The notes under the pieces were generated by a model that did not search any database, was not told where the DNA came from, and saw only the letters and a list, made by a program, of their open reading frames with translations. From positions 496,001-560,000 of the forward strand of contig JAKIMF020000001.1 of assembly GCA_022605425.2 (NCBI GenBank): a stretch of 64,000 nucleotides of DNA. The letters run 5' to 3'. Position 1 is the first letter of the stretch, and each line of letters starts with the position of its first letter. Position numbers and translations under genes: made by a program. Shown here piece by piece: positions 1-49,016 of this stretch. Origin of the DNA: Hamiltosporidium tvaerminnensis FI-OER-3-3. Taxonomy: Eukaryota > Fungi > Microsporidia.

Positions 1-543
1 TTTTTTACAATGTTTAGTTCGGGAAACAATACTGAAAGAATAAGAATGAGAAATCAAAGAACAGACAATGAAACAATACTTGATTTATATTGTGGAATAG
101 GTTATTTTTTAATACCTTTGCTTTTAAATAATCCAAGTAGTAATGGAATTGCATGTGAAATAAACAAATACAGCCAGATTGCTTTAATAAAAAATATTGA
201 AGTTAATAAACTTCAAAACAGAATTACAATTTGTTGTGGTAATCACAGTTCTTTTATCGATTTATATATAAACAAGTGTGATAGGATTATTATGGGATAT
301 TTGCCATGCCCTTTTGAGGGTATCAAATATGCAGTGATTGCTTTGAAGAATACCGGTACTATTCATTTTCATAAAGTAATAGAAAAAAATGAAACAGAAA
401 GTTATTTTTCTAAAATTAAAGATCATCTATTAAAATATTTTGAAGATGTAAAGCTAGAATCTCTAACGAAAGTGAAATCATATTCGGTAAGACAATATCA
501 TTTCGTCTTTGACATTAAAGTATTAAATAAATTAAAATTTTAA
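1..543 (+). CDS. TYW2: tRNA wybutosine-synthesis aminocarboxypropyltransferase TYW2/Trm12 (Met-10+/Trm5 superfamily), 5'-truncated by the window edge
   Basis: The frame is open from base 1. Motifs MFSSGNxxERxRM, SAM-binding DLYCGIGYF, DRIIMGYLP and VKSYS..YHFVFD fit TYW2/Taw2 better than Trm5. Confidence 0.75.
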   Translation, partial: FFTMFSSGNNTERIRMRNQRTDNETILDLYCGIGYFLIPLLLNNPSSNGIACEINKYSQIALIKNIEVNKLQNRITICCGNHSSFIDLYINKCDRIIMGYLPCPFEGIKYAVIALKNTGTIHFHKVIEKNETESYFSKIKDHLLKYFEDVKLESLTKVKSYSVRQYHFVFDIKVLNKLKF

Positions 544-3500
544 TATATCTTTAAATTTTTAGTAAATATTTAAGAAAAAAAAGTGAAAGAAATCTTAAGT
601 ACAAAAAGGAAATTTTCTCAAGATTAGTTGTTCATTTGCATGTCTATAACCACATAATTATTTCAAAGACTCATTGCTTTTAAAACATATAAATTATTGT
701 CATATATTCTTTAAACTGTATTTTTTTAATATTAGTTTAAATTTATTTTTCTTTCGGGTCTAACTTTAAGTTTTCGAGTAAAGTGGTAGTACATTTAAAA
801 AAGAATAATTCATATATAATCTAACCTAGAATGTTCATGTTTAAGGCTTTACTCTCATAATTCTTGTTACGGACCATTCCTAGTTTTAAATTTAACGATA
901 TTTTTAAAGTCAGATTTATATAAAGTGCCTTAATGTGAAAAATAAGATTTCGTTAGATTGTAATATAGAGACGTACACCGTTTCCACTATGTAATTCCTG
1001 TAAGAAAATATCATGAACTTTATTGAAAAGAATCTGCGACGTCGAGAATAGAATAAACTTTAAAAGCTTTGAAATCATTGGTATCGTCTTCTTTTCAGAG
1101 AAATAGAGAAGAGTTAACTTAGTTGTTTTTCAGAAGGATGTTTTTGTGAAATATAAAATTAAAAAGCTGATAATTAGCCAACATACTATATTGTCAATAA
1201 ACTAGAAACAAAACTGAATATACTTCGCGTATCACTAAGATAGCGAAAAACCTGGCTAATAACCAGGTAACTTGAATGTGTATCTAACGCTTTTAATAAA
1301 GAAATCTATTTCTAGAGGCGTCGGACCTACAAAATATTTAAGCACGACGTATTTTGTTTTAATGGTAAATATAAAAGTAAAATAGAATAGAAATTGAATA
1401 TAATATGTTTCCTTTGATCAAAGATAAAATTTAATATATAGAGCCAGCCCCCAGTGCCAAACGGCACAAATTAAAAATTAAATTTGATTATAAAGTTTTA
1501 AAGGAGATTTTAACTAATAAATCATAATTTAGATGCAGTTTTTTTAATTATGAACCAATCATTTCTTTTTTTTTTAATTTTATCGGATGTGAATAACAAA
1601 GGCGAAGAGATAAGAAGATATGTTTTAAAATATTCTAACTGGGCCATTTTTTGATCCCGATTTCGATAAAATCAAGAATTAATGATATGACATTTTTTAA
1701 AAAAATACAACATTCTTTTAAAACTGTAGCACACTTTATTTTTTTCTAAAATTAACCGAGATCTAGGTTTATATAAATATCTGATTCCTCGAGACTCATT
1801 GGTTACCTCGAAAAATATCTACAACCCGGAGAATTTCATTTGAAACATGGTTACTTTCTTTACATAAGAAAGGTATATAAAATAATAATTGAGCTAGATA
1901 TCATTAAGATTACAAATTTCTAAAGAAGTATTCTATGCTTATCTGCGAAATTCTTTGGTATAAAACTACAGAAATACTTTCGTTTTTAGCACTAATATAA
2001 TTTATGATTCAAAAATAATTTAATAATTTGATGGTAGGAATACTAATAGTTCTCTCAAACAGACTCTTTTTTGGCAATATTAATCCAATTCGAAATATAA
2101 AAGAGTTTCAAATTTATTTTATCGAATGTAAGCTAATCTATGAATTTGCTTGGAAACAAAACACATAAGAAATTAACAATAGTTTTTAATAATCCAATGG
2201 GTAATGTTTTAAAGTGAGTATTTTTGGTTTTTTTATTAATATTTTTTCTAGCGCATAATACATTTGTCATGTTTCGATATTCCGAATATTCTCAAAGTAT
2301 TTTTTATGTTTGATGGATTTTGGTTGGTTTAATATTTTTTGATATAAAGTAAATATAATGTACATTTCTGTTTCAAAAATTTTATCAATGAAACGTTTTA
2401 AATTCTTTGATATTTTTTGAAAGAAAAAACCAATAAATTTAAACATTTTGGATATTTTTGAGTAAAAAAAATAGTTAAAGTTAATTTTACTCATAAATTT
2501 GTTCCGATAAAAAGTATCCTTAGGTTTTTTTTTTAATTTTTGCGCTTGAGAAATATATTATTCAGTTAATTGTACATTTATCAATGAATCAACATAAATT
2601 TAAAGAATAATTCTCAAGTCGTTGATAAAAGATCAATTCGAGATGGTATAGCATATTCTCTTGTATAATTAAACAAAAATAATTTTAATGAATCACTCCA
2701 ATAAATCCGAAATTGAATTTTAAATTTTAATTTTATTATAGGAAGCTTTAGAGCTAAATACTTTCTATTTTCAAGCATATATAAAACAATTGGAATTTTT
2801 ATTTGATATATATCAACTTCTTTAAAAATTGAAAAATTAGAGTTTTTTGCTCGATATTGATGAATTCTATGTTTGGCAGAGATATCTGCACACTGGCATT
2901 ACCTGCTATAATAGTACTTTGCTAAGATTTTCAACAAAATAATATGTCAAACAATTCTTTAAGCGGAATAGTAGGACGTGGTTCGTTAATTTGCATTGCT
3001 GGCGCGTAATTTGCCTACAAAACGCAGTTTCTGCTCCAAAGAAACCAGTATTCCTACTTTTTCACATTTTTTGAACCTAATAAATTTCGAAATAATATAC
3101 GCCTCTGCGAGTTACATGGAGTTTATCTAAACCTTTGGATATCATATCAACTATTACAATCTACTACCTGATTTTTGCCGGGTTCTAAAAAAGTGTGTTT
3201 TTTGTACTTCCTAGGCGCCAAGTCTTCCAACTTGGGTGATCAAGGTACGTTTCATGATTTCGTATGGGGCAATACTTATATTATTATTTTTGAATTAATT
3301 CTTCAGGTATTAAATGTGGTATGTTCTACGACTGCAACCTTTCATTATACCTTTATTACGTGCAAAAGCAATCAAATATAAGTTAATTATCTTGGCAAAT
3401 TATTTAAGCTTAACCAAATTTATATTTATAGTTTATTTTTCTTCAAAGAATGGTGAAAAATTTATTTCTACGAAAGTCAGATTTTAAAAGCTATATATCT

Positions 3501-6500
3501 CAGAAAATAAATGGTAAGCCTAATTAAATAGAATTCATTTTCGATTTCAACTATTTTTTAATACATTTTGTATTTCTTCTGATTTATGAATTAAAATTCC
3601 TATTATTTTTTTAATAAATATATATTACAATAAAGGTCTCCTTATATAATATCCATTAATAGCATTTCATATTTTGATTGATTATCATAATCTTCTATAA
3701 AACAGTATTCCCTAACTTTCAATTTCTTTTGATTATATTTGGGTTGCTTTTTTTGAGAAAAAATAGCTCATATTAGATTATTAAGATCTTATTTATTAAT
3801 CTAATATTGATTTTCTTCTAATACTTAAGTATTAAATTTATATTTTGCAATCACTCATCATTTTCAAAAATTTGGGGACCGAGATGTTAGTATTAGTTTA
3901 CTTTGTAAACGAAACAACCTTAACGAAGAATTGTTTGTTTCTATCTAGAGAACCGGTTCTAATTCATAAATATTAGAATGCAAAACATCATTCAATGTTT
4001 TATTAACAGTGTTGGTTAGAGTTTTTAATATCCAACTTCTTATTGTCTTAATTAGCCTTTTCTAATTGTGCTGGTGCATATAATTCTCGGAACCTTTTGA
4101 AAATTAGTCTTATATCTAGAATACTATAAAATACATTTAACGTCTGGTTTAAAAAATACGTTGCTCGTTTTAACTTGGAAGTTATGGGCCCAGTAAAATT
4201 TATATATATTCTAATGGTTTTTAAATTTATTGAGCGCACATATTTTGCAATTCGAAATACTATAGAAACCTATTGTAAATGCAAATTACATTTAAATTCA
4301 AGATTCTCGCTTTCGTTTTTCTCATTTATGTTAATATCTACGAAACTTATAAATCAACTATAAATTTAGTTGCTAATGTTTTTTTTTGGGTTCCCGTAAG
4401 TTATTACGACTCATATTCAAAAAAAGTTTTACATGATCATTGGAGCTTTTATAATTTGTAATCGATAGACATAATATTTTTCTGAGGTATATCCACATTT
4501 TTTTCCCTAGAATGACTTGAAATATATTCTGTACTAAAATTTATTTTTAATGCCGCAGATTCATGTTTAACTAGTCCACTTTTTGAGGCACTATCAGATA
4601 TTTTATAGAATAAGAATCGTGAATTATTACAAAATCCTGGCTGATGTTTCTAAAGGTTATTTTCGTAAATTTTTAAAACCAAATGGCTAGTTTTTTGAAC
4701 AAGGAAATATTTTTTTGTTTTTCTAAAAGTGATTTACCTCTAAAACTTTCATCATGGAGGTTATATTTATATAAATTTAAACAAATGAAAATATTAGAAA
4801 CATCCCAAATTATGAATTATGTTTTATACGATTATGTACATAACGTTTAGATTTAAAAATATTTCATTCTTGTTGAACATTTAAGCAATTTTCAGAAGGC
4901 TTTTTTTGCCAGATGTAAGTTTTTTCCGAACAATATTATCGCTGGTTAAAATTACAAAGAAAGGTTTTATAAAAAATGTGTCCTGTAAAATACCGAAATT
5001 TGAAGTGGTTGGATTTTAAGAATAGTTTTGGTTAAATAATAAGCTTTATAAAATTTTCCGGAATATTCTCTGTATTTTTCGACATTCAATATCGATTGAG
5101 GTTGAACAAATATACAGAAACATATTTTCATAATGATTCTTACACTTTAATACATGTTATTTTTAATTGAGAGGTCTTGTATAGATTTTTTCTCACAAAC
5201 ATTAGCTTCTATATTGTATTTTGAATCATGCTTTTTCAAATGCCTCAAATTGGAATGATATTTAGCATGTGTTTTCTAGTCAAAACTTTATTTTTTTGTG
5301 ATTTTTTTTAGACTTATATTTACATGATATATATAAAATACAGCAGCTTAAAAACCAGAATATTTAAAATTTAATCGAAATTAAAAATTATTTTTATTGT
5401 ACAATACTATTATAAATTATAGGATGCTATTTTTATAGTGATTAATTTTCATAATTAATCAAACAATGCCTTATGATTTTTGCGTTTGTATGAATTCGAT
5501 ATTTATCTATAATAGATAAGTAGACGGATTGCGCATTTGATTTATGACATCAAAATGGCTTTTTTGACTGGGAAAATATTATCGCTTTGAACTATATGTA
5601 TAAAAAAAATCCGAGAAGATTAAAAAATATAGTATTTTCCTAAAATAAAATTAGGAGGTACTTTCTCGTTAACTTATCAAATTAGTTCAAATATTAAACG
5701 CGACTTTTGATATTTTTTTCTGAAATATATTTTATATTGTTTAGGTGTGTAAAATAAAGCTCTATATATTCAAAGACTAAACCATGTCATTTATATAGTT
5801 TTGTTTTCGATAGAATACGCTACTGTTATTTTTCAGGTATTTGGAAAATAAGTAAGCATATAACATGCGAAATTTTTACGCTTGAAATAGAAATTTCATA
5901 AAAAATATTCTTTTTAGATTAAACAATTATACAGAATAAAATAGAGAGAAAATATATAAAAAATACAATTATTCTTATAAAAATATTAAAGTTATTTTAA
6001 ATTTAAAAAAAATTTAAGCATAGATAGGCAATTAAAAGTTTCAGAAAGTAATTACAAGGTTTTTTTTGGTTCATAAAAAGTGTTAAAAGAGAGGAATTTA
6101 AAAAAAAATATACATACCAGATACATAGGATTCAAATATCTGTTAGGTCTTTAATTTTTAAATAAAACCTATTTTTGGATATAAGAAGTTATTTGTTTTA
6201 ATCAAATTTATATTTGTGTTACGAGAAAGAAAATCAACTGCAATCATCGGACTTTTGATTGATTATTTTTATTCTTTGCGTGACCATAGTTTTCAAAATA
6301 TTTAATCATATAATGCTGTCTTTAACAAAACTAGATTCCAAAGTAAATATTAGAACAAACAAATACATTACCATTTCCGTTTCAATCAAGATCATCACTA
6401 AAAAAGAGATCTGGCTATCAAAAAAATCAGGCAAAAACGCATAATAATGCTCCAAAGGAGAACATGAGACAAAAAATTGTTTCATTTTCACTAATTACTT

Positions 6501-6574
6501 TTTTAAGCTTTAAATAGAGTTTTAAAATAAATGAAAATGATAATTCGGATGAGTTATTTTATTGGTTACATATA

Positions 6575-9500
6575 CTACTACTAGATAGCGCTACGGCTAT
6601 TATAGAGCCCTGATTTCTTTGACGATTTTGCTCTATTATTTTCTAACTTTCGCTTTTTTCACCTACTGTTTCACATTAAATATTTATAGAAATTATCTAC
6701 ATCATCCATTCATATATCCTGTGGTTTAACCTTGGTTCTTTTCCAATTGGGTTTATACATATAGACTTGGTTTGCCTCTCTATCAGACTGCATTGGTATT
6801 ACATGTCCTAGCCACGTTAATCTACCTCTTTTTGTTTTAGTCCCTTTTTTTTTCACGAAAGAAGTCATAAATTTCTTGATTAGTTCAACTTTTTCGCACA
6901 TTTTTTTTGGATTTCAGCTATATATTCTGCGAAAATTTTCATTCTCATGTGTCTAAAATTAGCTCATCTATTTTTCTTCATAATCCAAGTCTTTTATCTA
7001 TACATTACAACAGAGCGTATAATTGTCCTATATATATTCTTTTTCGAATTCCTACTTATTTATGTTGATTTAATCAAGCATTGTAGCACAAAGTAAACTT
7101 TATTTCCTGCTTTCATATTTTCCTTAATTACCCCTATTGCTTTTGTTAGTTTCATTTATTTAAGTTCCCAAATACAAAGCTCGATACCCTTTCAGACTTC
7201 ATTGAATCGATTTCGAAAGCATTTTTAAAGTTATTTGGCGAAAATTTCATTTCCTGTTACTTTTTTTTGTTTTATCTTTAATCCGGCTTTTGTTGATTCT
7301 GTTACGATTGTACCAAAAAGATTTTATTTTGATTTCTTTCTGCATATTTTAGTTAGATCGTCGGCATATGTTAGGCATAAATTTTTCCTATCATATATAA
7401 TTTCATTTCCTCAGATTTTGTTTTTACGAATAATATTTTCCATTGTTAGGTTTCATAGAATCCACGAAACTTATCTCCTTTCTTTAGGTTTTTGCTTATT
7501 CTAGAATCATTTGAAATATTGTTTGTTATCCATATCTTTCCTTTTCGTTTCTGCTAGAGTTAATTTTATAATTCCTATCAGTTTTGATGGAATTCGAGAA
7601 TCCCCAATAGCATTAAACATGTATTTCCGATGATTAGTATCAATAGCTGTTTATAATCTAGAAAAAATTGATATGTAGGAATATTATATTCGTAGCATTT
7701 TTCCAAGATCATTCTTTCTAAAAAATATTTGATCTGTTGTAGACTCTCCTTTACGGAATCGTCATTGATAATCTCATATAATTATTCAGCTCTTTCTCTG
7801 ATCTATTGGCAACTTTTTCGCTTAAAACTTTATCACCAGTATTTAATAGAGATCTTCTTCTATAATTAGACTTGTTTATCTTCGTACCTGTCATATGTAA
7901 AGGTATTATCAGATTTAAATCCGTTCCTCGGGCATTTCTGCATTTTTTTGATATGATTTTAACTAATTCGTATAAATTTGCGAATAATTTATCACGCCCG
8001 TATTTTACAAACTAAGCTTAAGTTTTATGTTCATCCGGTGCTCTATGATTTATCAAACATACAATGGCAGTTATTGTTACTTAGAGAGTTGGATCTTCGA
8101 TTGTTTTAATATTCTTACTTCGCTGAATTATTATGATATTCTTCCTTATCAGATTTATCCTCTTTCATGCAGTTTAGGAGGCTTTCAAAATATTTAGCTA
8201 TGTATCGAAACTTTTTGGGATCCGAAAAATTTCCACTATTCGTTTCTTATAAAATAAAGGCTTTGGATACAAGGCCTTGTTTCTCATTTCATATGAATTC
8301 ATACATTCTTCTTATATTTTTACTTTCTTCTATTCATTCTATTTCTTTTAGCCTTTTAATCCTCAGACCCTCTATTTTCCCATTAAAACACGGCTTTCAT
8401 TGGTTCTTGATGTACAGAACTTCTGTTTTATAACAATGGTATTAGGTTGTCGCATTTTTAATTCTGGCTTTGATTCGTTGATTATAACCTCCCTATACTC
8501 TTGATCGAATCAAGATCTCGTATCTCAGGTTTATTTAAATCCCATCATTTGTTCTGCTGTTTCTTTGATTGTTTTCTTTATCTTGGTCCAGATGTCATCT
8601 ATGTCAGCTGATTTATAAGGCTTGTTCATGTTTAAAGGTTTAGTCAGCGTCTTTGCATATTTTCTCAAATATTCAAATCATTCGGCATATAGTATCATAT
8701 CTTTCTAATTTAGATTTTCCGGGGGTTTTGAGGCGGATATTCGCTGCCTATAAATCATCTTAACCAAAAAGTGATCTAGATTCACCTCAGTGCCTCCAAA
8801 GCTCTTCACATTCATGACACTTGATGCCTGTTTCGAATCAATAAATACGTGGTCGATTTGATTGAATGGTATACCATCCGGAGATCGCCAAGTGTATTTA
8901 TGCATTGTTTTATGGGAAAAATAACTGCTAGAATATGTCATGCTCTTACACATTGCAAAATTGATCTGTGTGATTCCATTGATTTTGGCTCTGTATGGAT
9001 AGTTTCCTGTCAGATAATAGGCTTGCACCCTATCTCCTTTCCTATATTTGAGTTCAAATTTCATATAACAATTTTATGTATTATTTTTTCGGGCACATTC
9101 GTAGGCAAATAGGAATCATTCATAGAATGCATAGTTTATTTCTTCATTAGTATCTTCAGCTGGGTCATGAATACATATCAATTTCGTGTTAAAGAAATGC
9201 CCCTTGAATCTTATTGAGCAGAATCGTTTATCAATAGGCTTATATCCCAAAACATTTTTCACAAGATTTTTTTTATGTAAAAAATGCTGTGCCCAGTACG
9301 TTAGTCGTGTTACCGCGGTAGAACACTCTGTATTCCTTTGCTTTTATCATATCTGACCCTTTTCATCTGATTTCTTGCAGTAAAACAATATCAATTTTAT
9401 ATTTCACTAATTCCTTAGATAGATTAGATGATGCACCTAATTGAAAAAGGCTTCGCATCATCCATGTTCCAATATTAATTAGACTTTTTTTCATTATTTG

Positions 9501-9642
9501 ATTTTTTTTAGAACTTATTTATTACGTTTCGGATCCGTAAAAATATGGTTATGTGAGATAAGAGTGTTGGCTCTATGCTCAACTCCTCCTTTATTCATAG
9601 TTGGGACCAGCAGAGCAGAACTCGTCGTATCTCTCACAAAGT
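6575..9642 (-). mobile_element. Full-length, decayed RTE-type non-LTR retrotransposon (APE endonuclease + RT)
   Basis: Remnant motifs INIGTW, LQEIR, HKYTWRSPDG..NQIDHVFID, YADDL and RLTWLGHV; (TAG)n 3' tail; 13-bp target-site duplication TTGGTTACATATA at 6562-6574 and 9643-9655; many stops and frameshifts. Confidence 0.9.
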
Positions 9643-10149
9643 TTGGTTACATATAGATATAAATATTTTATGTATAAAATAATTATGCAGTTATTTTTAA
9701 ATTGTTTTATTGAATATAGAAGATGGTTTATTAAGGCGCGAATTTAATCCACTGGTATTATTTTTTAAATTCAGTGAATAAAAAAATATCCAATTAGGAA
9801 TAGCTTAAAAGTTGGGACAAAGACTTACTGGTAAAATTATTTTTGAAAGCTTGAAATAATCTTTCACATTTTAAGTTCTAATATTGTCGTAACTTCTTCG
9901 AAGCATGCAGATTTAGTGTATTTTGGTAGAATGGCTTTGTTTTTTGAAATAAATAGCTTGGTGACCGTGTTACCAAAGAAATGTTTTGATTAAAAGGTTT
10001 ATTTATTGACTTCCGCAAGTTTTTTTCTTCAATCTTTCTTCTATTCTTATGGATTAAATAAAATAATTTTTTTTTTGAGAAAAACTATTTAATAGAATTC
10101 TAGGTTAACAAAATTTATCTTTTTTATATAATTTTATCTAAATAATAAC

Positions 10150-11050
10150 TCCATCGCTATGCTTTTTTACATCTGGCTCTTCATTCATGTTTATTGTCGA
10201 TTCTTCTACTCTGATTACGTCATCAAAAATAAGGTATAAAATATTTTCGATGTTTGATATTTTAACACCACATTCCTAGTTATTTACTCGCTCGAAGGTG
10301 GTGTTTGTTTTTTATGCATCTCTGGTAATTAAATAACACATAAAGACACACTCTCCTTACCTTCTTCGCGATTTAGTCTCTATTCGAGTGCTCTTCTCTG
10401 ATCAGAATATAATTTTCGACTGTCTTCTTTAGTACTATCGACCAGATACATGACTTTATACTCTCAGATATTTATAGTCTTTTCACATTTGTACTATGGT
10501 ATTTTGTTACAATACCGTTCCGGTTCATCACATAAGGAATTATCACCATGATCCATTTATAAATAAGACCTAGTTTATTTTGAATAAGTCATGCTTTCTA
10601 AGCTTATCTGTTTTAACTATCTTAAGAAAGTCTTGAGATTGTTTCTTACCTAAATAAGAGTTATCATATTTTTCCTCTTATTTTAGATTAATATATATGG
10701 CTTATTAGACCTTTTTCGCCATCAGTTTGATTCCGGCGTTAATTTTAATCTTTGCATGCTCGTTATCAAGAATTCCTGCATTGAGTGACTACTAATTTGT
10801 TTCAAAACTCAAATTTATATCTATTAAGTAAGATTAGATATATGTATCGTATCATTTCATTTTTTCCTCTAGTATAACCATGGCTGTCCATTTTTTCACA
10901 TCTCGTCGTCAAATAGTCTAATTTTTCCTTGATAGTGTTGTAGTGTTGACTCTTATTTTCTAATCCCCCAGAATACATTTTTGCCCCGGATATAGCAGAA
11001 CACTGTTTGATCAAGTAATCTTACATTCCGCTTTTTAATCATTCTTAGAG
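10150..11050 (-). pseudogene. Decayed coding sequence, possibly a retroelement Gag-like remnant
   Basis: Coding-like composition, a 70-aa ORF fragment and a degenerate zinc-knuckle-like CDEPERYCNK near 10500-10535. Boundaries are approximate. Confidence 0.3.
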
Positions 11051-11204
11051 TAAATTTAAACTTATCTGCTCGTTATTTTTAGTATTATATAACTTTGAAT
11101 GTAGTTTTATTTTTCTATTTCGTTGCATAGGTTAGCTAGTTGAAATTCTTTAAATTTCTTCTTTGTGGCTTCATCTTTCAACCTGTATTTTATTCTTAAA
11201 AAGT

Positions 11205-11369
11205 TTTATGCGAAAATACAATTACTGGTTTTTGTACAGTAGGATAGTACACGGAATGTAAAGCAAATCCTCTATAATCTCGAATTACAATAGATTAAAA
11301 GAAACAGATTAAAAATTTAATTTGTACAGCGTCAATACCGAAAAAAAGAGAAATGGAATAAGTAAGTAA
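11205..11369 (+). repeat. Short dispersed SINE-like repeat, copy A
   Basis: Ends in GAGAAATGGAA-TAAGTAAGTAA and aligns by eye with 14580-14782 and 36055-36258. Confidence 0.6.
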
Positions 11370-13057
11370 CTAAGAATACTAAGCATATATACATTCAATT
11401 TTAGAGAAATATTTGTTTATAAACCTAATAGTAATTATAAAAGAACCTAACAAAACTAGAAAATATCTATAAAACCAAGCTTTTCGTTGTGTATAATTTA
11501 TAAATATCGCTAATCTGTAGAACAATATATTTTTCGCTAAAAGTACAAAATAAAGGAATTGAAATGCGGTTGAGCTATAGACTCTTAAACTATAGCTTTT
11601 GGTTAATTAAAATTACACTTGTTTTTATTTTTATAAAACGAACTAGCATTATAGAAGAAATTTACGGAAAAAGTCTTTTCAGCAAACAAATTCGAATATC
11701 GATTATCCCGAAGTGTATTTTTATATCTAAAATGAAAAAAATAAAACTATCAAGGGTTTCCAAAGATTCATTCACTTATTTGAAAGTTTGAATAATGATA
11801 GTAATTGGAAAAAAAAGATATTCAAACATAGTATAGCTTTCTTTGTTATGTTCAAGGCGAGTGTATATTACAAAAACCTATTTGAACTTCCTAGTAATTC
11901 TGGAAAATTAAAGAAATATTGGTAAATTTCAGTGCAAAACTACGGATGGGGAATTAAATCAAATTTTAAGCCATATTTACTTGATTTTATAACATGTTTT
12001 TAAAATTATGAAAGCAATCTAATAAAATGTATCGCTACTTTTATGTTTTATAAATTGTAAAGAGGGATTGCAGGAAATAGTGTTAACACAAGAAAAAAAA
12101 AATTTCAAAATATTTTGAATAGGAATTAAATATATTTTAAGTTCAGTTGTAGAAAACTTTATCTAGGACAATCTTCAAATGCCAAAGTATTAAAAAAATA
12201 GAAATAAATTAAATTGAAATAAAACTAGGTTTTATTATCTTTTACTAATTGTAAAAGTATTTTTAAAAACTTAGAGTGATATTCTAGATACAAGTTTATA
12301 TAGTATCAACAACAAGTGAATAAACATTTAGGTTTTGGTTTTAGTATCGGTTATTAGTTTCAGAGTAATACTAAAATGTGAAACATATTATAAGAAGGAT
12401 ATAATATTGTAGTAGATTGAGAAAACTTTTGTTTTCTAAACTCTAGTCTGAATGTATTTAGACAGCCGATCAGCAAGGTATTGGAAAAACAATGAAAAGA
12501 ACTATAAAAACATATTTTCTGATATGTGATTAAGTTTTAAATTTATAAACATTATATAAGAGTGATTCTGTTTATATTTTACCCAAAAAAATCGGAAATA
12601 TGATGGAAATAGAAACAAGTGTCTGACAAAATTAACATTGTGGGAAATAACAAAAATTATAAATTCACTTAATTAATTAATTCTTGAAATCATATGCCTT
12701 AATAATTTGAATTAAACGATTAAACAATTGATTTTTTTAAAAATTTAATTATGTATTTCAAAAACAATTGCAAAGTTCGATAGATATGTTTATCTAGCTT
12801 AGAAAGCTAAAAAAATATGCTACTTTTTTATTATTCCTTGTGATATTATTAAATTTTTTTTACATTTCCAAAAACTAGAAAATAGATTAATATATATTTC
12901 TGATTTAAATTAAATTGTAATAAATTAATACCGATCTAGGAACCAGAGAAAAGTCTATATTTAATAATAGTAATTTACTTCATATTGTTATGATTTTTAT
13001 TTATCACAGTTTTTTAAATAAAATATAAGTAAGATATTCAAAATACGTTGATTTGGT

Positions 13058-14351
13058 ATGCAATTTATGAACAAAATAATTCAAATTTTCTTACTAAAAA
13101 TCAACTTTATATTTCTAGGAAGGAATAAAATAAATTACATTCAAAACCTAGAAGACAAGTTCCGCGAATTCTTAGATTTATATGTTGATTCAATTCAAAA
13201 ACAACTTTTTGAAAATTCGAAATATGATTTACACCTAATAAGTATTAATAATATAAACAAAACATGAACATTCATGTGCTCAAGTTTTAAAATATATTCC
13301 AATGAAAAAATTCGATCTAAATTTTCTTATTACTTCATATACTTCAAATCATTTCTTTAGATATTTTTTTATTTTCTCGTTTTACAAGCAAAAAACATCT
13401 TCTGCAATCAAATTTCGATCTACTGAGAGTAATATTGTAAAATTTAAGAAAAGTGTGTTTATTTTAGATCATGAAAACGCTTATTCATTTATTGCAAGAT
13501 TTATAGTTTTTTTTGAAAAAATATTCAAAGTTTTAAACAACTATATGACGAAATATGATGGCGTCTTTATAATCCAACCAATAAAATCAGCAGAATATAA
13601 TGAAAATGTGATGACTGAAATATTAAGAAATTACAATGATTATTTCTATTTGAATTTAGTAATTATAATTAAAAATGAATCTACAGATTTTATGAGAAAC
13701 AATATTATTTCCAATGAAAATTTCATAAAGGAATATATTAAACAATATTTCTTCGTTTCTTTGGAAGCTCGATCGGTAATACGATTAATAGACAAAATAA
13801 AACACAAAATCCAAGACATATCATTTCTAAGCTTTGATCTACCGATAAAAATCAATCGAGATGGATTTTTAAATCATCAAATAAGAAATTCTTCATATAA
13901 TATACCCAATTCCCGCACAGATAGTATGGAGAAAATTTTATATTTGTGCATCGATAAGTACGTTGTCATAAAAAACCACAGGATATTAGTCTTACAAAAG
14001 AAACTCAAACATTTAAACTTTTATCGTATCTTTAAAATTTCAAGAACTAATGAAAATGGCAAAAAAACACAGACTTGTTTTCTTTATTTATTCTTATATA
14101 CATTAGAAATTAAAAGATCAATTCATTTTTTCTCATTCAAAGTAAAAGATAAAACCCAATATGATCTGAAAATTACACTAAAGAAACACGTAAATTTAGA
14201 TCCTGATGTAATAATGTTTAAAACTATGACCACATGGGATTTTTCAAGTGACTATTATGATGTGAAAAAAGTTTTACTGAATATGATTGCAAAGAATCCT
14301 TCTGAGTTTAAGGATTTGATCAAATATATTTCTAGCAACACAAAAGAATGA
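13058..14351 (+). pseudogene. Orphan ~430-aa gene, frameshifted copy (69-aa and 349-aa ORFs)
   Basis: Paralogue of 50616..51908. An extra A at ~13264 (AACATGAAC versus AACTGAAC) creates a TGA stop. The downstream frame has its own ATG at 13302. Confidence 0.75.
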
Positions 14352-14579
14352 ATAAAATAATAATAAATATTAAGTTTATGGTTTCTCAACATGATTTGCG
14401 TGATTTTTTCTATTTTATTAACTTTTTTCTCAAAATGGTTTCTAGTTTTTATATTTGAATGTCATTTTTTGCAAAATTTACATGAAATTTGATTAATTAT
14501 ACTGGTGTATACATTTTTTAGAGCAATGCAATGTTTCAAGGTTTGATAAATTTACTTCTATTTCCAATTTAAATACCTT

Positions 14580-14782
14580 TAAAAACTATCTGGCTATCGT
14601 TGAGTGTGTGAAATTAATGTGAAAATCATTGTTGACATTTTGGTGGGATATAGTCCAACTTTGTATCTTTAGATTAATCCCTAGCACTATGAGTATAACA
14701 GATTAAAAGAAGCCTTTCGAAATTTTCTAGTTGTTCATCCTCGACACCCAGAGGTGAACGACGAATGGAATAAGTAAGTAAG
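14580..14782 (+). repeat. Short dispersed SINE-like repeat, copy B
   Basis: TGAGTGTG..ATGTGAAAATCATTG..GGATATA ... GACACCCAGAGGTGAACGACGAATGGAA(TAAG)3; homologous to 36055-36258. Confidence 0.65.
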
Positions 14783-15943
14783 TTGCAATTATAATGATTT
14801 ATGTTGTATGAATTCTTAGAGCTGCGAAAGAGAATCTAAGCCAACCCCAAATTTCAATCTAACTTAAAAAAAAAGAAAAAGTATATGACTTAAATAACAT
14901 CCAGGTATATGCAAAAATATTGCTTGGTACTTAGAAATGTAAAACCAATATTTTAAAGTATAGATTTAGAGTACAGGAAATAAAGCCCATGGTATGGAAT
15001 AGAATTTTAAGATGTTATCACGGATATGGATTTACTTAATATCCAATGGCTTAAATAGGCTTTACTTCTTTTCATACCCAAATTTTTATTTATTTAAAAT
15101 TCGTTAAATTTTCTAAGCTTGAATAGTTCGACAGTATTTCGAACAATTATAAAAGGTTTAGATCCAAAGATTATTATATGACACAGAATCAATATAGTTC
15201 TGTAGTTTATTGTTGTCTAAAATTCCAATATTAATATTGATCTGAGAGGCTAAATAATTTAAATCTTGACTCGATTTTAAGATAAACTGCCAAAAGAAAA
15301 AAAAATTGATGGTATTGTAACCTCAGGAAATTAAAAAACTTAGATCGAATAATATCAAAATAACATCTGATGAGAATTCTGGCTTATATGATGCATCAAA
15401 ATTCAAAGAAAAACATAACCTTTATATTAATTTAGAACCTAGCTGTAGTGATAGTTACCAAAAATAAAATTAAAAAAAAATAATTAACATCTTAGTATAA
15501 AAATATATAATTGAACTTATATAGTGATGGTTTTGGCTTCATATAAATTTATGAAAACCAAGTAAAATACTCACTAAAGCACTCATATAGATTAATATAA
15601 AATTATAAAACATTCAAGATCTCTGATTTAGTCTAGACACGTTAGAAACATCCTTATAACTATTAGCTTAGCAAATAAATGATCTACCTTTTAAATTTTC
15701 GATTTATTGGAATAGCATTCAATACTGCTCAGCATATTATTAGTTAAACAAAAAAAATTAAAAATTATATAATTGATATTAAGAATCTTCAAAAGAACTT
15801 AAAAATCAAAATCTAATATTGGTTTTCCTGGTGATAAATTAGACGTATTTATTTAAAAAATATAACATTGGGAATAAAATAGTTAAAATCGAATTGAAAA
15901 TAAATTTAATCTTAATGAATTAAAATATGAAATAAATTTTTCT

Positions 15944-16327
15944 TTATTGTTCCTTATTGGAAGAGACAAAATCTACGAAATCTGGAATTCTATCTGTAAT
16001 CATAAACTTAACTTGACAATTAGAGCATTCTAAATATCCTTCAAATATCTCATAACCAAGTAAAACTTTTGCAAATTCTTTAAGTTTAGAATTATCCCCA
16101 TTAATAAGCAAATCACAATCATTTTCATTCAAACTTGTGACTTCCAATTTTTTAATGATATTTTTTAATAATTTCCCTTTTTCGATATAAAATTTATTTA
16201 TATGTTCTTTGATAAAATCTAAATCTTCTTCTATTTCTATTTCTTCTGCTTTTTCTATAAATACATTTAAAAAATCCTCAGAATCACATTGATTACACTT
16301 TAATATTGAAATAAGAAATGGCTTCAT
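15944..16327 (-). CDS. TRM112: Methyltransferase activator subunit Trm112
   Basis: 127 aa with N-terminal MKPFLISILKCxxC and C-terminal EIFEGYLECxxC..FMITDRIPDF, typical of Trm112. CCCC lies 8 nt upstream of the ATG. Confidence 0.9.
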   Translation of the reverse strand: MKPFLISILKCNQCDSEDFLNVFIEKAEEIEIEEDLDFIKEHINKFYIEKGKLLKNIIKKLEVTSLNENDCDLLINGDNSKLKEFAKVLLGYEIFEGYLECSNCQVKFMITDRIPDFVDFVSSNKEQ

Positions 16328-16384
16328 CTTAAAATGGGGATTTCTAACCGTTTTTTATATAAATTTTTAATCTGGTATAATCCC
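16328..16384. promoter_or_regulatory. 57-bp bidirectional promoter between TRM112 and the SSF1-like gene
   Basis: GGGG at 16336-16339 (CCCC on the minus strand before TRM112), a central T/A tract with TATATAAA, and CCC at 16382-16384 immediately before ATG 16385. Confidence 0.7.
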
Positions 16385-17020
16385 ATGAAAGAATTAGAAG
16401 AAAATAAAAATAAACTGGTAATTAGAATAGGAAAAGTTACTAAAAATGTAAAACAATTAATTACTGATTTAAGAAAAGTTTTTGAACCACACGTAGCATT
16501 AAAAATTCAAGAACATAATAATGATTTAATTGAAAAATATATTCCAATTATTCATCAATTTTTTCTCTCACATTTTTTTGTTTTTACTGAAAAAAATGGT
16601 GAAATATTATTAAGAATTTCAAATTATTTACATCATGGCCCAACATATTTCTTCAAAATAGAAAATTTTAAAAATATTTTTGAAATAAATAAATGCCTTT
16701 CACAAAAATGGTTTAAAAAAGATCCTATCGTTACATTCAGTGGTGATGACTGTTATGAACAGAATATTTTTAAAAATTTAGAATTTTTTAAAAATGAAAT
16801 AAAAGATGAAAATATTCTTAGAAATATTCATTTACATTTCGAGAATAAAATAATATATTTTAGACATTATTTTATTAAAAAAGAAGAAAAAGATTCAATA
16901 AAAATTATTTTAGAAGAAATAGGACCATCAATATCAATGTCATTTATAAAAGAAGAAGATGGTTTCTTTAATCAGAAAAATATAAATTTAGATTTAAACA
17001 AATATTTAAAAGAGAAATAA
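16385..17020 (+). CDS. SSF1: Brix-domain ribosome biogenesis protein, Ssf1/Peter Pan-like
   Basis: LVIRIGKV..VKQLITDLRKVFEPHVALKIQE, GPTYFFKI, IYFRHY and LEEIGP. Start moved from 16334 to the CCC-ATG at 16385. Confidence 0.8.
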   Translation: MKELEENKNKLVIRIGKVTKNVKQLITDLRKVFEPHVALKIQEHNNDLIEKYIPIIHQFFLSHFFVFTEKNGEILLRISNYLHHGPTYFFKIENFKNIFEINKCLSQKWFKKDPIVTFSGDDCYEQNIFKNLEFFKNEIKDENILRNIHLHFENKIIYFRHYFIKKEEKDSIKIILEEIGPSISMSFIKEEDGFFNQKNINLDLNKYLKEK

Positions 17021-17232
17021 AATTGATTAATTAAAAAATTTTGGGATTTAAACAACTATTTAATTAGAAAGGAAATAATTTTTAATTTGAAAATATATAT
17101 TCAAAAGTGAAATGAAAATCATTTTCTGTTTACAAATTGAAATTTCTGATTAAAATAAATATTTAACAGTAAATCAAAATGATGTTCTATTCTGCAAAAT
17201 AAACGAATAAATTATAGATTTGAATTTAAAAT

Positions 17233-19179
17233 TTATAAATTTTTGTTTAAAAAATGTTTGATTTCACTTAAAATTTGAATAAATTTACATTTTCTAGTTT
17301 TTCTTGCAATCCATGGGGATATTTTACTTATCAAATTATTATATCTTGAATCTATCAATACAATACTTGCATAATCAGTTTTATGTCTAAGTGCCCTTCC
17401 TAATGCTTGATTAACAGTTTTCATTGCTATTAGTGTCGAATAATCATTTCCATGGTATTTTATTCTTTCTTTTAATTCAGTATTAACTGTTGGATAAGGT
17501 ATACCAATTATAATTAATAATCTACAAAGATAATCATTAAAATTTATACCTTCACTCATTTTACCTCCCATTACAGAAAAAAAAATAACAGATTCTTCAA
17601 AAACTAAATTTTTAAATTCTAAAAATGAACTCGTATCATCATATAATATTTTCTTAATAAATTTAAAATTATTTTTTTCTAAATTTATTATTGTTTCTTT
17701 GAGAATTTTTAAATAATATTTTGAAGGTAAAAAACAAATAATTCCACCTTTTTTTACGGTATTTGATAAATTAAAAATTGTATAAACAATATCTTTTAAA
17801 ATTTCAGGAGATTCTCTTGTTTTATAATTTAATTTTATTTCTTTGTTCGAAGGTCCTGTAGATAAAATAAAACTTATAAAATTTGTACAAATTGAATCAT
17901 AATAATAATATTTGACTGTTCTTTCTTTAAATAAATTTAAAAGATTATCGATCGGTTCCATAGTACCTCCTGCTAGAATCAATGATTTACAAACAAAAAT
18001 ATCTTCAAAATATATTTTAGGATCCAACGGAGTAAATCTTATTTTTTTATTGTCATAAAAAATTCTTCCATGACAATCACTCATTATTAATAAAACTAAA
18101 AATTTCGTAATATTGAAAAGCTGAAGATGCAAATTTGTATTAAATCCTTCTAATTTATAAGCTATTCCCGAGTTATGTAAATATTCTTCTAATTCCAATA
18201 AATTGTAATTATGAAGACGAGATTTTATTAAAAAATCATTTACAACAATGCATTCTTCGTTTTTTTCTTGACTAGAAGATTCTGTTTTCGTTTCTAAATT
18301 ATTTGCAAAGTTTTCATGAAATTTCCAAATTTTTCCTAAGATTTCACAAATATTTTCAATTCTTTTCAAATTTACTTCACTCATTCTGCTTTCATATTTC
18401 AAATAATAATCTTCAAAAGCTTTAAAATACTTTTTTACAATTTCAAAAGAAATCGTTACAGTATTCATTTGTATTACAGATTCATAAATATTATGCGCCT
18501 CATCTACAATTATAATCGAATCTGAAATATCAATATTTGCACTTCTACGACCCTCTTTACTAAAAAGTACCGTATAAGGAAGAAAAACAATCTCACATTT
18601 TTTAGAATATATTTTGGCAAAATAGTATGGACAAAACTTTTTTTCTTTTCCTTTTTTTATTAATTCTTCAATATCAATAATATCAGTTTCGTTTTGTGAT
18701 TCAAAATTACAATAAAATTCACAATCGTTTTTTGAAATCAAAGCTTTACATTGTTCATTTATAATTTCTAATTCAACATTTGTTTTATTTACTTTTTTAT
18801 TTACACAGTAAAGTTTTCTCGAACCCAAAATAATTGAATTTACATTCGAATCAAATCTTTTCAATTCATTAATTGCTTGATTTAATTGTGTATGAGTTCT
18901 TGAACAATAAAATACTTTGGTTATTCTATCTGATTGTCCAAAAAGTTGTTCCATAAGTTTTTTATTTTCTGAATTCAAACCAAAATACGTATATTTATTG
19001 GATTCTTCTTTCGGTGGTATAAAATAGTTATAAACCGATAATAAAAGCGATATTGTTTTACCGGTTCCAGTCGGACTTGAGAAAATACCTATTTCATTGT
19101 TTTCTATAACACACTTTGCTTTCTCAATAAAATCTTTTTGAATTTCATACAAATTACCTTTTAATTCCTCTAAAGTCAT
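17233..19179 (-). CDS. CHL1: Fe-S DEAH DNA helicase Chl1/DDX11 (XPD family), intact copy
   Basis: GIFSSPTGTGKT, YCSRTHTQL, Fe-S cysteines (SRKLYC..CPYY), IIVDEAHN, LAGGTMEP, GGKMSEGINF and VNQALGRALRH. First ATG is at 19179 with CCC about 11 nt upstream; the track's TTG start is unlikely. Confidence 0.92.
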   Translation of the reverse strand: MTLEELKGNLYEIQKDFIEKAKCVIENNEIGIFSSPTGTGKTISLLLSVYNYFIPPKEESNKYTYFGLNSENKKLMEQLFGQSDRITKVFYCSRTHTQLNQAINELKRFDSNVNSIILGSRKLYCVNKKVNKTNVELEIINEQCKALISKNDCEFYCNFESQNETDIIDIEELIKKGKEKKFCPYYFAKIYSKKCEIVFLPYTVLFSKEGRRSANIDISDSIIIVDEAHNIYESVIQMNTVTISFEIVKKYFKAFEDYYLKYESRMSEVNLKRIENICEILGKIWKFHENFANNLETKTESSSQEKNEECIVVNDFLIKSRLHNYNLLELEEYLHNSGIAYKLEGFNTNLHLQLFNITKFLVLLIMSDCHGRIFYDNKKIRFTPLDPKIYFEDIFVCKSLILAGGTMEPIDNLLNLFKERTVKYYYYDSICTNFISFILSTGPSNKEIKLNYKTRESPEILKDIVYTIFNLSNTVKKGGIICFLPSKYYLKILKETIINLEKNNFKFIKKILYDDTSSFLEFKNLVFEESVIFFSVMGGKMSEGINFNDYLCRLLIIIGIPYPTVNTELKERIKYHGNDYSTLIAMKTVNQALGRALRHKTDYASIVLIDSRYNNLISKISPWIARKTRKCKFIQILSEIKHFLNKNL

Positions 19180-20156
19180 TTCTATTACTGGGTAGTTCAA
19201 TTATTTAAAATAATCATTCTGATTCATACGAAATAACGGACATCAATTCATTTTTTAAAAAAAATTTTTTTAATAGCAGAGAAGAATAAATATTTTAGTA
19301 AATTTTTATCTGGAATGTACATAAATAAATAAAACAATATTTTATAAATCTTACATTATGTTAAATTTCTTTAGAAATACTATTGAATGATACTTTTAAG
19401 TTATTTTAAATTGATTCACAGAAAACCAAATTGAAAAAAATAGTGATATTCGTTTTTTTTGAAATTATCCAAACCAAATCTTCTTGATTTTCTTCATCTA
19501 TTTAAAATTTTGTATGCTGCGCTGTAAATTTAACCTTTTTTTTACCATGAAATTGACAGACCAGGTACATTAGAAATGATTAAACTGATCAAAAGGGATT
19601 TAATTTTATAGCAAACATTAATATTTTCAGGTCTAGCCAAATAAAACTTTTTGAAGATATAATTCAAATTTATTCGATTACTCTAATTTTAAGTGATTTT
19701 TTTGCAACATGGTTTTACTTTCTATGTTTTCCTATATATTTTAAGTAACCAGACTTATTCTAATAAAGTTTAGTTCAATAAAGATTATTTCTATCTACTT
19801 TTAATCAGATACTAAATTTGGATCAAAATTTCACGATTTCTTTTGATTTAATATTCACTCTGTCATATAATGCTTTCAAAAAGTAGTATTTTAAAAGTTA
19901 TATAATCAAGCAGATTATTTTTTGATCTGATTTTCATTGCAAAAATATACTTGGGAACACTATTAACACAATAAAAAAAGTATGTAAATAAAATTGCTTA
20001 CTTAAATCATTAATTATAAATTTAAAATTGAAATTTTAAATCACAAATTTTGGATGATAATGATACATTTATGTAAAGTTTTAACTTATATTTTTGTTGA
20101 AAAAAACCAACTTTACTACAAAGTATAAATAATTAATTAGAAAATACAATATTTTT

Positions 20157-45110: not shown

Positions 45111-45778
45111 TTCTTAGGTATCTATGTTTAAGTAAAATGTTTTGCAAACTGTATTGGAAAATAAATTCAATTAAAGAACAACTTTTGCGTGTAGATGAAA
45201 AGCTCGAAAATACCAGTCAAAGCAGAGATAAAAAAATGATCAAAAACAAAATAGCAAGTTAAAAGAGCGAGAAATAGATAAGAGAAAGAAAAAAAACAGA
45301 ATTGATTGAGTTTTATATTTGGTTAAAATTAAATTAAGATAGCTTATATTTAAAAATTATTCATTAAATTGGCAATTTTAACAGTAAATTTGGAACAAAT
45401 AAAGTTTATTCATTTTGAAATAAAATAATTATTATTTTTTTTGATTTCGACTTCCACTTTCAAAAATTAACTGACACCAATTTTTTTCGAATTTTCTTTA
45501 TTTTAAATAAATATTATTTTTTTTCAATTTGGTTTTCTGTGAATCAATTTAAAATAACTTAAAAGTATCACTCAGTAGTATTTCTAAAGAAATTAAACAT
45601 AATGTAAGATTTATAAAATATTGTTTCATTTATTTATGTACATTCCAGATGAAAATTTACTAAAATATTCATTCTTCTCTGCTATTAAAAAAATTTTTTT
45701 TAAAAAATGAATTGATGTCCGTTATTTCGTATGAATCAGAATGATTATTTTAAATAATTGAACTACCCAGTAATAGAA

Positions 45779-47727
45779 ATGACTTTAGAGGAATTAAAAG
45801 GTAATTTGTATGAAATTCAAAAAGATTTTATTGAGAAAGCAAAGTGTGTCATAGAAAACAATGAAATAGGTATTTTCTCAAGCCCGACTGGAACCGGTAA
45901 AACAATATCGCTTTTATTATCGGTTTATAACTATTTTATACCACCGAAAGAAGAATCCAATAAATATACGTATTTTGGTTTGAATTCAGAAAATAAAAAA
46001 CTTATGGAACAACTTTTTGGACAATCAGATAGAATAACCAAAGTATTTTATTGTTCAAGAACTCACACACAATTAAATCAAGCAATTAATGAATTGAAAA
46101 GATTTGATTCGAATGTAAATTCAATTATTTTGGGTTCGAGAAAACTTTACTGTGTAAATAAAAAAGTAAATAAAACAAATGTTGAATTAGAAATTATAAA
46201 TGAACAATGTAAAGCTTTGATTTCAAAAAACGATTGTGAATTTTATTGTAATTTTGAATCACAAAACGAAACTGATATTATTGATATTGAAGAATTAATA
46301 AAAAAAGGAAAAGAAAAAAAGTTTTGTCCATACTATTTTGCCAAAATATATTCTAAAAAATGTGAGATTGTTTTTCTTCCTTATACGGTACTTTTTAGTA
46401 AAGAGGGTCGTAGAAGTGCAAATATTGATATTTCAGATTCGATTATAATTGTAGATGAAGCGCATAATATTTATGAATCTGTAATACAAATGAATACTGT
46501 AACGATTTCTTTTGAAATTGTAAAAAAGTATTTTAAAGCTTTTGAAGATTATTATTTGAAATATGAAAGCAGGAATGAGTGAAGTAAATTTGAAAAGAAT
46601 TAAAAATATTTGTGAAATTTTAGAGAAAATTTGGAAATTTCATGAAAACTTTGCAAATAATTTAGAAACGAAAACAGGAATCTTCTAGTCAAGAAAAAAA
46701 CGAAGAATGCATTGTTGTAAATGATTTTTTAATAAAATCTCGCCTTCATAATTACAATTTATTGGAATTAGAAGAATATTTACATAACTCGGGAATAGCT
46801 TATAAATTAGAAGGATTTAATACAAATTTGCATCTTCAGCTTTTCAATATTACGAAATTTTTAGTTTTATTAATAATGAGTGATTGTCATGGAAGAATTT
46901 TTTATGACAATAAAAAAATAAGATTTACTCCGTTGGATCCTAAAATATATTTTGAAGATATTTTTGTTTGTAAATCATTGATTCTAGCAGGAGGTACTAT
47001 GGAACCGATCGATAATCTTTTAAATTTATTTAAAGAAAGAACAGTCAAATATTATTATTATGATTCAATTTGTACAAATTTTATAAGTTTTATTTTATCT
47101 ACAGGACCTTCGAACAAAGAAATAAAATTAAATTATAAAACAAGAGAATCTCCTGAAATTTTAAAAGATATTGTTTATACAATTTTTAATTTATCAAATA
47201 CCGTAAAAAAAGGTGGAATTATTTGTTTTTTACCTTCAAAATATTATTTAAAAATTCTCAAAGAAACAATAATAAATTTAGAAAAAAATAATTTTAAATT
47301 TATTAAGAAAATATTATATGATGATACGAGTTCATTTTTAGAATTTAAAAATTTAATTTTTGAAGAATCTGTTATTTTTTTTTCTGTAATGGGAGGTAAA
47401 ATGAGTGAAGGTATAAATTTTAATGATTATCTTTGTAGATTATTAATTATAATTGGTATACCTTATCCAACAGTTAATACTGAATTAAAAGAAAGAATCA
47501 AATACCATGGAAATGATTATTCGACACTAATAGCAATGAAAACTGTTAATCAAGCATTAGGAAGGGCACTTAGACATAAAACTGATTATGCAAGTATTGT
47601 ATTGATAGATTCAAGATATAATAATTTGATAAGTAAAATATCCCCATGGATTGCAAGAAAAACTAGAAAATGTAAATTTATTCAAATTTTAAGTGAAATC
47701 AAACATTTTTTAAACAAAAATTTATAA
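45779..47727 (+). pseudogene. CHL1: CHL1/DDX11 second copy, split by two +1 G insertions
   Basis: Near-identical to 17233..19179 but CAGAAT has become CAGGAAT at ~46572 and ~46677, giving 274-aa and 321-aa ORF fragments. May be a sequencing error. Confidence 0.8.
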
Positions 47728-47939
47728 ATTTTAAATTCAAATCTATAATTTATTCGTTTATTTTGCAGAATAGAACATCATTTTGATTAAATGTTAAATA
47801 TTTATTTTAATCAGAAATTTCAATTTGTAAACAGAAAATGATTTTCATTTCACCTTTGAATATATATTTTCAAATTAAAAATTATTTCCTTTGTTATTAA
47901 ATAGTTGTTTAAATCCCAAAATTTTTTAATAAATGAATT

Positions 47940-48575: not shown

Positions 48576-48632
48576 GGGATTGTACCAGATTAAAAATTTA
48601 TATAAAAAACGGTTAGAAATCCCCATTTTAAG
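48576..48632. promoter_or_regulatory. 57-bp bidirectional promoter, second copy
   Basis: Mirror of 16328..16384, with GGG at 48576-48578 and CCCC before ATG 48633. Confidence 0.7.
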
Positions 48633-49016
48633 ATGAAGCCATTTCTTATTTCAATATTAAAGTGTAATCAATGTGATTCTGAGGATTTTTTAAATGTATT
48701 TATAGAAAAAGCAGAAGAAATAGAAATAGAAGAAGATTTAGATTTTTTCAAAGAACATATAAATAAATTTTATATCGAAAAAGGGAAATTATTAAAAAAT
48801 ATCATTAAAAAATTGGAAGTCACAAGTTTGAATGAAAATGATTGTGATTTGCTTATTAATGGGGATAATTCTAAACTTAAAGAATTTGCAAAAGTTTTAC
48901 TTGGTTATGAGATATTTGAAGGATATTTAGAATGCTCTAATTGTCAAGTTAAGTTTATGATTACAGATAGAATTCCAGATTTCGTAGATTTTGTCTCTTC
49001 CAATAAGGAACAATAA
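48633..49016 (+). CDS. TRM112: Trm112, second copy
   Basis: One amino-acid difference (I/F) from 15944..16327. Confidence 0.9.
   Translation: MKPFLISILKCNQCDSEDFLNVFIEKAEEIEIEEDLDFFKEHINKFYIEKGKLLKNIIKKLEVTSLNENDCDLLINGDNSKLKEFAKVLLGYEIFEGYLECSNCQVKFMITDRIPDFVDFVSSNKEQ

Follow-up and report, generated by a model that had tools for sequence, protein, structure and literature searches.

A probable gene-conversion tract between linked paralogues in a duplicated orphan gene of Hamiltosporidium tvaerminnensis

The inverted duplication and its genes

The stretch of DNA analysed here, called the window in the following, comprises 64,000 nucleotides (G000:C12:496001-560000) of the genome of Hamiltosporidium tvaerminnensis, which consists of 21.6 Mb in 17 contigs and has a G+C content of 26%. 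The species is a parasite of Daphnia, and its near-chromosome assembly has been published (PMC10542269). Within the window, positions 944-19450 are repeated in inverted orientation at 64000-45510; with the neighbouring DNA added, the duplication pairs -793..19450 with 65737..45510, i.e. 20.3 kb at 97.1% identity. Long segmental duplications have been reported for the genus (PMC6944219). The identity of the arms is about 99.3% in the inner 3.5 kb, where conserved genes are located, and 96-97% in the remainder. Each arm contains one copy of an orphan gene, named A or B after its arm, and a third close copy, C, is found beyond arm B. These features are:

1..19450, + strand: arm A of the inverted duplication; begins 793 nt upstream of the window
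45510..64000, - strand: arm B of the inverted duplication; continues 1737 nt beyond the end of the window
13058..14351, + strand: orphan gene copy A; frame broken by a +1 insertion at 13264, with a 349-aa ORF from the ATG at 13302
50616..51908, - strand: orphan gene copy B; intact, 430 aa
72847-74489 (window-equivalent), orientation as B: paralogue C (locus L003); 7 kb past the end of arm B and 21 kb from B

Paralogue C corresponds to KAK1350821.1 of H. tvaerminnensis (77% protein identity). There are eight matches to the orphan family in the genome: the three close copies are located on one contig, which also contains further members with 41%, 34%, and 29% identity. Homologues were found in Hamiltosporidium magnivora and H. 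tvaerminnensis only; Pfam gave no domain for the family, a profile search of PDB sequences no relative, a search of the ESM Atlas by features no look-alike of the protein, and a profile search of 1.84 billion representatives only fragments of the family itself. Outside the patch described below, dN/dS is 0.29 for A-B and 0.40-0.43 for A/B versus C, which indicates that the copies are real coding genes under constraint. The N-terminus is weakly hydrophobic and not conserved, and this segment is missing in the most distant subfamily. Structure prediction with AlphaFold2, based on a family alignment of nine sequences, resulted in a mean pLDDT of 34.5 for the whole protein and of 41.0 for residues 225-430; both models are unusable for a fold search or for judging the exposure of loops, and the mostly-coil placement of the patch in them carries no weight.

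Paralogue C is flanked on both sides by C-terminal fragments of LINE reverse transcriptases in the same orientation (G000:C12:567375-571664; L014, L017). In the public gene models P0003 and P0010, the orphan ORF is fused to such a fragment, and UniRef lists P0003 as 'Reverse transcriptase'. A distant family member of 425 aa lies upstream of C in both species. Among the neighbouring genes, the CHL1-type helicase is intact in arm A (17233-19200, 655 aa); its counterpart in arm B contains two separate +1 insertions at 46573 and 46678, each being an extra G before GAAT on the gene strand. This pattern is opposite to that of the orphan gene, which is intact in B and frameshifted in A; reciprocal decay of the duplicates or polishing errors could be responsible for it.

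The age of the duplication was assessed by means of contigs from other isolates, namely IL-BN-2 and BE-OM-2 of H. magnivora and IL-G-3 of H. tvaerminnensis (names according to PMC6944219). At 368 sites distinguishing the arms, the contig of BE-OM-2 shows the A state 296 times, the B state 69 times and neither of the two only 3 times; other contigs are alike. Contigs of IL-BN-2 (L013) and IL-G-3 (L022) extend beyond the arm and reach the unique B-side flank with TsaD/Kae1. As the diagnostic states are common to H. magnivora, the 20-kb inverted duplication is older than the split of H. tvaerminnensis and H. magnivora. Note that the other isolates have contigs with a mosaic of A and B states, which is due either to arm-to-arm exchange or to switching during short-read assembly. 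Because the comparator assemblies are mosaic and may be chimeric between the arms, it is not secure that the version of the patch called alpha below resides on arm B of these isolates. The locus thus documents A/B mosaic short-read assemblies along with a duplication predating the species split, and for orthology at the orphan gene the short-read assemblies of other isolates are to be used with caution. Short-read contigs (L013, L015, L022) also break near the start of the patch, within about 25 nt: for example, L015 ends at 13818 and L022 begins at 13846. These breaks suggest branches of the assembly graph at the patch.

Divergence of copies A and B within the patch

The patch is a segment of 90 nt, whose two versions are designated alpha and beta:

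13842..13931, + strand: alpha patch of copy A; the old, unconverted state of the A/B gene; matches H. magnivora
51036..51125, - strand: beta patch of copy B; C-type tract in an A-like scaffold; proposed recipient of a conversion

The initial annotation, made by hand from the letters of the window, had singled out this segment, and a direct count agrees with it: 29 of the 90 nt differ between 13842-13931 on the + strand and the reverse complement of 51036-51125, there are no indels, 17 of the 29 residues are changed, and two codons differ silently. The patch is exactly the top 90-nt window in the alignment of the arms, having 29 mismatches as compared to 14 in the next one and 2.4 on average; the maximum reached in 2000 permutations was 14. 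The next most diverged windows, 3703-3792 (14 mismatches) and 3219-3308 (13), are located in the repeat-rich outer arms, and their counts are at the edge of the level expected by chance from the permutations.

Other parts of the original description have to be adjusted. It had assumed a duplicated gene of 430 aa, which is correct for the intact copy B but not for copy A, where the insertion at 13264 leaves the ORF of 349 aa. That the protein as a whole differs well above its neighbours was borne out: after the frameshift, 33 of 362 residues differ between A and B, as compared to 1 of 127 in the TRM112-like protein and 1 of 228 in SSF1/Brix. The characterisation of the patch as almost purely non-synonymous is overstated. 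We counted 24.5 non-synonymous differences at 70.5 sites and 4.5 synonymous ones at 19.5 sites; the excess has the predicted direction, but the resulting dN/dS of 1.69 (Nei-Gojobori) is not significant (Fisher p = 0.21), and the values for A-C and B-C are 0.74 and 0.45, respectively. At the same time, dS is 0.28-0.51 in the patch and thus 4- to 7-fold higher than in the rest of A-B (0.074); for A-B itself, the excess (0.28 versus 0.074) has a Fisher p of 0.02-0.06, depending on rounding. The raised dS argues for an older ancestry of the segment, not for faster amino acid change. Moreover, the patch is the least conserved window of 29 residues across five subfamilies, with a mean pairwise identity of 0.29 versus 0.49.

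Origin of alpha and beta

In H. magnivora IL-BN-2 (L013), an intact gene contains alpha without a single difference (0/90). Alpha has 6/90 differences to the patch of H. magnivora BE-OM-2 (L012), two to that of H. tvaerminnensis IL-G-3 (L022), and 28/90 to the C types. (The contig of IL-G-3 was reached by a homologue search; exact look-ups of two SSF1 products had given no match.) The identity across species shows that alpha is the long-standing state of the A/B gene; it is the old version and not a new one. Using C alone as an outgroup had suggested the opposite, namely 20 of 29 changes derived in A, and copy A as the derived copy; this polarisation was overturned by the data of the sister species.

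Beta is of a different kind. Outside the patch, copy B differs by 2.9% from A and by 13.4% from C. Inside, beta differs at 29/90 positions from A and at 11/90 from the C gene of BE-OM-2, to which it has only 2 differences in the left 55 nt; paralogue C of its own genome is 21 kb away and in the same orientation, yet it differs from beta at 15/90. A triplet test of informative sites confirmed this switch: inside the patch, B is C-like at 20 sites and A-like at 6, whereas outside it follows A at 139 sites and C at 12 (Fisher 2.7e-13). The Fisher value drops to 8e-16 if the C gene of BE-OM-2 is taken as the second parent. Maximum-likelihood trees are incongruent: the scaffold separates A/B from C with support of 100/100, and the patch separates alpha from beta plus the C types, again with 100/100. 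By means of AU tests, a grouping of B with A was rejected for the patch (p = 3e-5), and a grouping of B with the C gene of BE-OM-2 was rejected for the scaffold (p = 1e-36). An AU test of a clade comprising all four A/B rows (patch data, p = 0.37) was replaced by the B-with-A test; it is uninformative, as in an unrooted tree this clade only requires that the C types are together.

The C-like states of B extend, in copy-A coordinates, from 13844 to 13931, and on either side the first informative sites with an A-like state are 13820 and 13962; the length of the tract is consequently 88-141 nt. On both sides, the patch is bordered by sequence shared among the paralogues:

13828..13843, + strand: upstream flank; invariant in 8/8 A/B/C sequences; end of the ISFLSFDLP motif; possible homology anchor
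13932..13951, + strand: downstream flank, KILYLCI; invariant in the same 8/8 sequences; second possible anchor

The contig of IL-G-3 (L022), which was added later, has one change in the downstream flank, at 13932. An incongruent phylogeny, raised values of both dS and dN, and sharp edges in shared sequence are features of a conversion tract, and they are observed here. Besides selection, the initial annotation had considered gene conversion from other paralogues, and this is the part of its reading that stands, since B has a patch of C type within an A-like scaffold. We regard the patch as probably being a short tract of interparalogue (non-allelic) gene conversion in a weakly constrained segment of a genus-restricted family. 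As such, it is a new instance of a known process, i.e. of ordinary ectopic gene conversion in the evolution of gene families.

The following course of events is proposed. The A/B type and the C type are old paralogues (dS of about 0.9 upstream of the patch), in which the difference at the 5' end has apparently been reduced to about 2-3% by homogenisation. The A/B gene first carried alpha, and this version is still present in copy A as well as in the sister species. Later, in the lineage leading to this assembly, C-type sequence would have replaced 88-141 nt of copy B, with the invariant flanks encoding ISFLSFDLP and KILYLCI probably serving as anchors. A possible donor is a C allele resembling the one of H. 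magnivora BE-OM-2 that has since disappeared, for instance through loss of heterozygosity in this diploid asexual lineage. Gene conversion has already been invoked for short runs of homozygosity in H. tvaerminnensis (PMC12376958); in a diploid species whose runs of homozygosity arise partly in this way, the loss of a donor allele is plausible. If the patch of B was overwritten by C type, the difference of 32% between A and B is imported divergence of old paralogues and not the result of rapid change after the duplication, and it looks mostly non-synonymous because it falls into the 29 least constrained residues of the family. A tempting false lead is thereby removed, as the top hot spot of the duplication would not reflect fast adaptive change.

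Part of the data is not predicted by a single clean conversion. No extant donor is closer than 11/90, and genome-wide DNA searches and the read contigs described below revealed no fourth version of the patch. Beta has private changes at 13853, 13908, 13920, 13926, and 13928, and B has two more within 100 nt downstream of the patch (14012, 14030). Private changes are 5-fold enriched in the patch (13/90 nt versus 34/1211 nt, p = 1e-5), and positions 13912, 13920, and 13928 have changed repeatedly and independently. The ratio of non-synonymous to synonymous private changes is 9:4 inside and 21:5 outside the patch, so that the excess is not specific to amino acid changes. Furthermore, the C genes of the two species are 1.3% apart overall and differ at 13/90 positions in the patch, and a sub-tract is common to beta and the C gene of BE-OM-2 (Fisher 8e-7). 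These features could stem from a donor allele that has been lost or was missed by the sampling, from several conversions that overlapped, or from mutagenic repair of the tract. The findings thus come close to a single neutral conversion from an old paralogue, the outcome which the initial annotation had set against its own reading, and depart from it in two respects, the private changes and the absence of a donor with nearly the same sequence. A modest lead is offered by this residual excess of private changes, which concerns a single loop in an uncharacterised family restricted to the genus.

Mosaicism is not confined to the patch. Between A/B and C, 58 of 222 nt differ in the adjacent block 13620-13841 (dS 0.93), a divergence as deep as the 28/90 between alpha and the C types, and the central block 13620-13931 is 26-31% different. 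For the first 211 nt (13051-13262; L003), only 4-7 differing sites were found among A, B, and C, as compared to a gene-wide difference of 13% between A/B and C; here, the 5' end appears homogenised among all three paralogues. Deep divergence beside the patch and a near-identical 5' end indicate that patchy homogenisation is general in this family. A B-type cluster encoding RNIGKCE..ILN (13438-13470/51497-51529) comprises 6 nt changes in 45 nt and occurs as well in the IL-BN-2 contig L013 and in the IL-G-3 C-scaffold contig L017. A genome search for this cluster gave no donor besides A, B, and C. With this distribution, it would be a second old 'mobile' patch.

Competing explanations and related systems

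The most serious alternative to conversion as the main cause is diversifying or balancing selection on a specificity loop, by which old loop haplotypes are kept and for which conversion is only the vehicle. The four loop types (alpha, beta, and two of C) do persist across two species, three or four states are found at each of the codons 13905-07, 13920-22, and 13926-28, no segment of the family is more variable than the patch, and the C genes are far more different in the patch (13/90) than in their scaffold (1.3%). The A-B ratio of 1.69 has the expected direction, but it is not significantly greater than 1 and is opposed by the values of 0.74 and 0.45 versus C. At synonymous sites, divergence and private changes have risen to the same extent as at non-synonymous sites (private changes 9:4 inside versus 21:5 outside the patch), which is why the strong diversifying or balancing selection postulated initially is not sustained. 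Alpha is 100% identical between the species, copy A is frameshifted, and the protein has no domain and no conserved hydrophobic N-terminus, the latter lacking in the most distant subfamily. A dN/dS significantly above 1 without raised dS, as expected for positive selection, was not found with 6-8 sequences, a sample for which the power is low and the test is weak both ways. Taken as the main cause, selection is unlikely. For population-genomic scans of the Daphnia-Hamiltosporidium system it has to be considered that conversion between paralogues can mimic balancing selection or trans-species polymorphism.

A more far-reaching version combines both processes. In this version, the 29-residue segment is a specificity loop, whose ancient types (alpha, beta, two of C) are kept in both species and redistributed between the three linked paralogues through conversion tracts of about 100 nt anchored on the invariant flanks; being locally mutation-prone, the segment would act as a small device for the combinatorial diversification of a host-interaction protein. 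We consider this speculative and quite improbable.

An error-prone repair burst in copy B, which made the patch in situ and without a donor, is very unlikely. It would explain why many changes are adjacent pairs and why five B-private changes in the patch are accompanied by two within the next 100 nt (14012, 14030). However, 20-23 of 26-28 informative states of the patch are exactly those of the C paralogues, and the left 55 nt are only 2 sites away from the C gene of BE-OM-2; random mutation would not recreate the sequence of a paralogue. For the bulk of the patch, the burst is largely refuted, and it survives only as an explanation of the beta-private changes.

An artefact might be suspected, i.e. 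a mis-assembly, an error of polishing, or an inverted duplication that in fact consists of two alleles of a single locus, since the assembly was polished with short reads (PMC10542269) and since an earlier warning stated that some Hamiltosporidium 'duplications' may be alleles (PMC6944219). The reads make this extremely unlikely. Logan contigs of Illumina reads from four runs were placed on 50400-52100 (1,701 nt). Run X7, whose label we infer to be H. tvaerminnensis, contains an exact beta contig (193 nt, 0 differences, depth 24; record 29) as well as one contig each of alpha (depth 43) and of the C type (depth 30). These values differ from those of two alleles at one locus, which would be present at about half the single-copy depth. 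The X7 contigs, in which rare variants are dropped, include no fourth patch type. Runs X16 and X18, whose variants match the assemblies of IL-BN-2 and BE-OM-2 (H. magnivora), and run X17 (other organism label) contain alpha and C types but no beta, so that beta occurs in only one of the four runs examined, X7. The presence of exact beta together with alpha and a C type in X7 indicates that the patch is not an assembly artefact, and it settles the reservation of the initial annotation that reads might support only one version. In addition, alpha was assembled independently in three other isolates, and an H. magnivora contig spans the inner junction of arm B into the unique flank.

Finally, the decay of a pseudogene, according to which copy A, frameshifted by the +1 insertion at 13264, accumulated changes in the patch without constraint, as suggested by the 20/29 A-derived changes upon polarising with C only, is refuted by the identity of alpha across species and deserves practically no credence: alpha sits in intact H. 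magnivora genes of 427 aa, only 3 private changes are found elsewhere in copy A, and decay would spread instead of staying within 90 nt.

The locus had also been proposed as a candidate for antigenic variation. Systems in which segmental conversion serves this purpose are the VSG mosaics of Trypanosoma, vlsE of Borrelia, and pilE/pilS of Neisseria; they draw on an extensive archive of silent donor copies, express the gene from a dedicated site, expose its product on the surface, and switch in the course of a clonal infection. What the orphan gene has in common with them is templated copying from related sequences, by which a variable segment of an otherwise constant scaffold is exchanged. Unlike them, it has three close copies, all being full genes (with A frameshifted), and carries its tract as a fixed part of the germ line; no extra variants exist among the read contigs. 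Only three loci in 21.6 Mb can be aligned with the patch, all of them full gene copies and none a silent cassette archive, and the types present in the read contigs are confined to alpha, beta, and C. The interpretation as an antigenic-variation locus thus lacks support. The Daphnia host is not known to have antibody-based immunity.

Interlocus conversion as preferred here resembles that in small gene families, such as the Gal/GalNAc lectin genes of Entamoeba (PMC3125142). The common features are a phylogeny of the tract in conflict with that of the flanks, linked donor and recipient paralogues with mosaic divergence of the family, and a weakly constrained tract between conserved anchors. The differences are that in our case no near-identical donor survives and that there is a 5-fold excess of private changes. 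The locus documents the exchange of tracts of about 100 nt between linked paralogues in a large-genome, largely asexual microsporidian. A second resemblance is to the concerted evolution of inverted segmental duplications: the arms are 97% identical, their diagnostic differences are common to the sister species, and this identity together with the A/B mosaic contigs of the sister species fits repeated arm-to-arm exchange. At the patch, in contrast, the arms were made dissimilar by the input of a third copy.

A minor observation concerns the sequence of alpha at 13846-13871, which can form a hairpin of 12 nt with a loop of 2 nt. In alpha, 11/12 positions are complementary, as compared to 9/12 by hand count in beta and the C types; the hairpin contains five alpha-specific changes, three of which, again by hand count, create pairs. 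Similar hairpins occur at 12 places in the 64 kb. This post hoc observation may be the trace of a templated mutation at a quasi-palindrome or may be due to chance.
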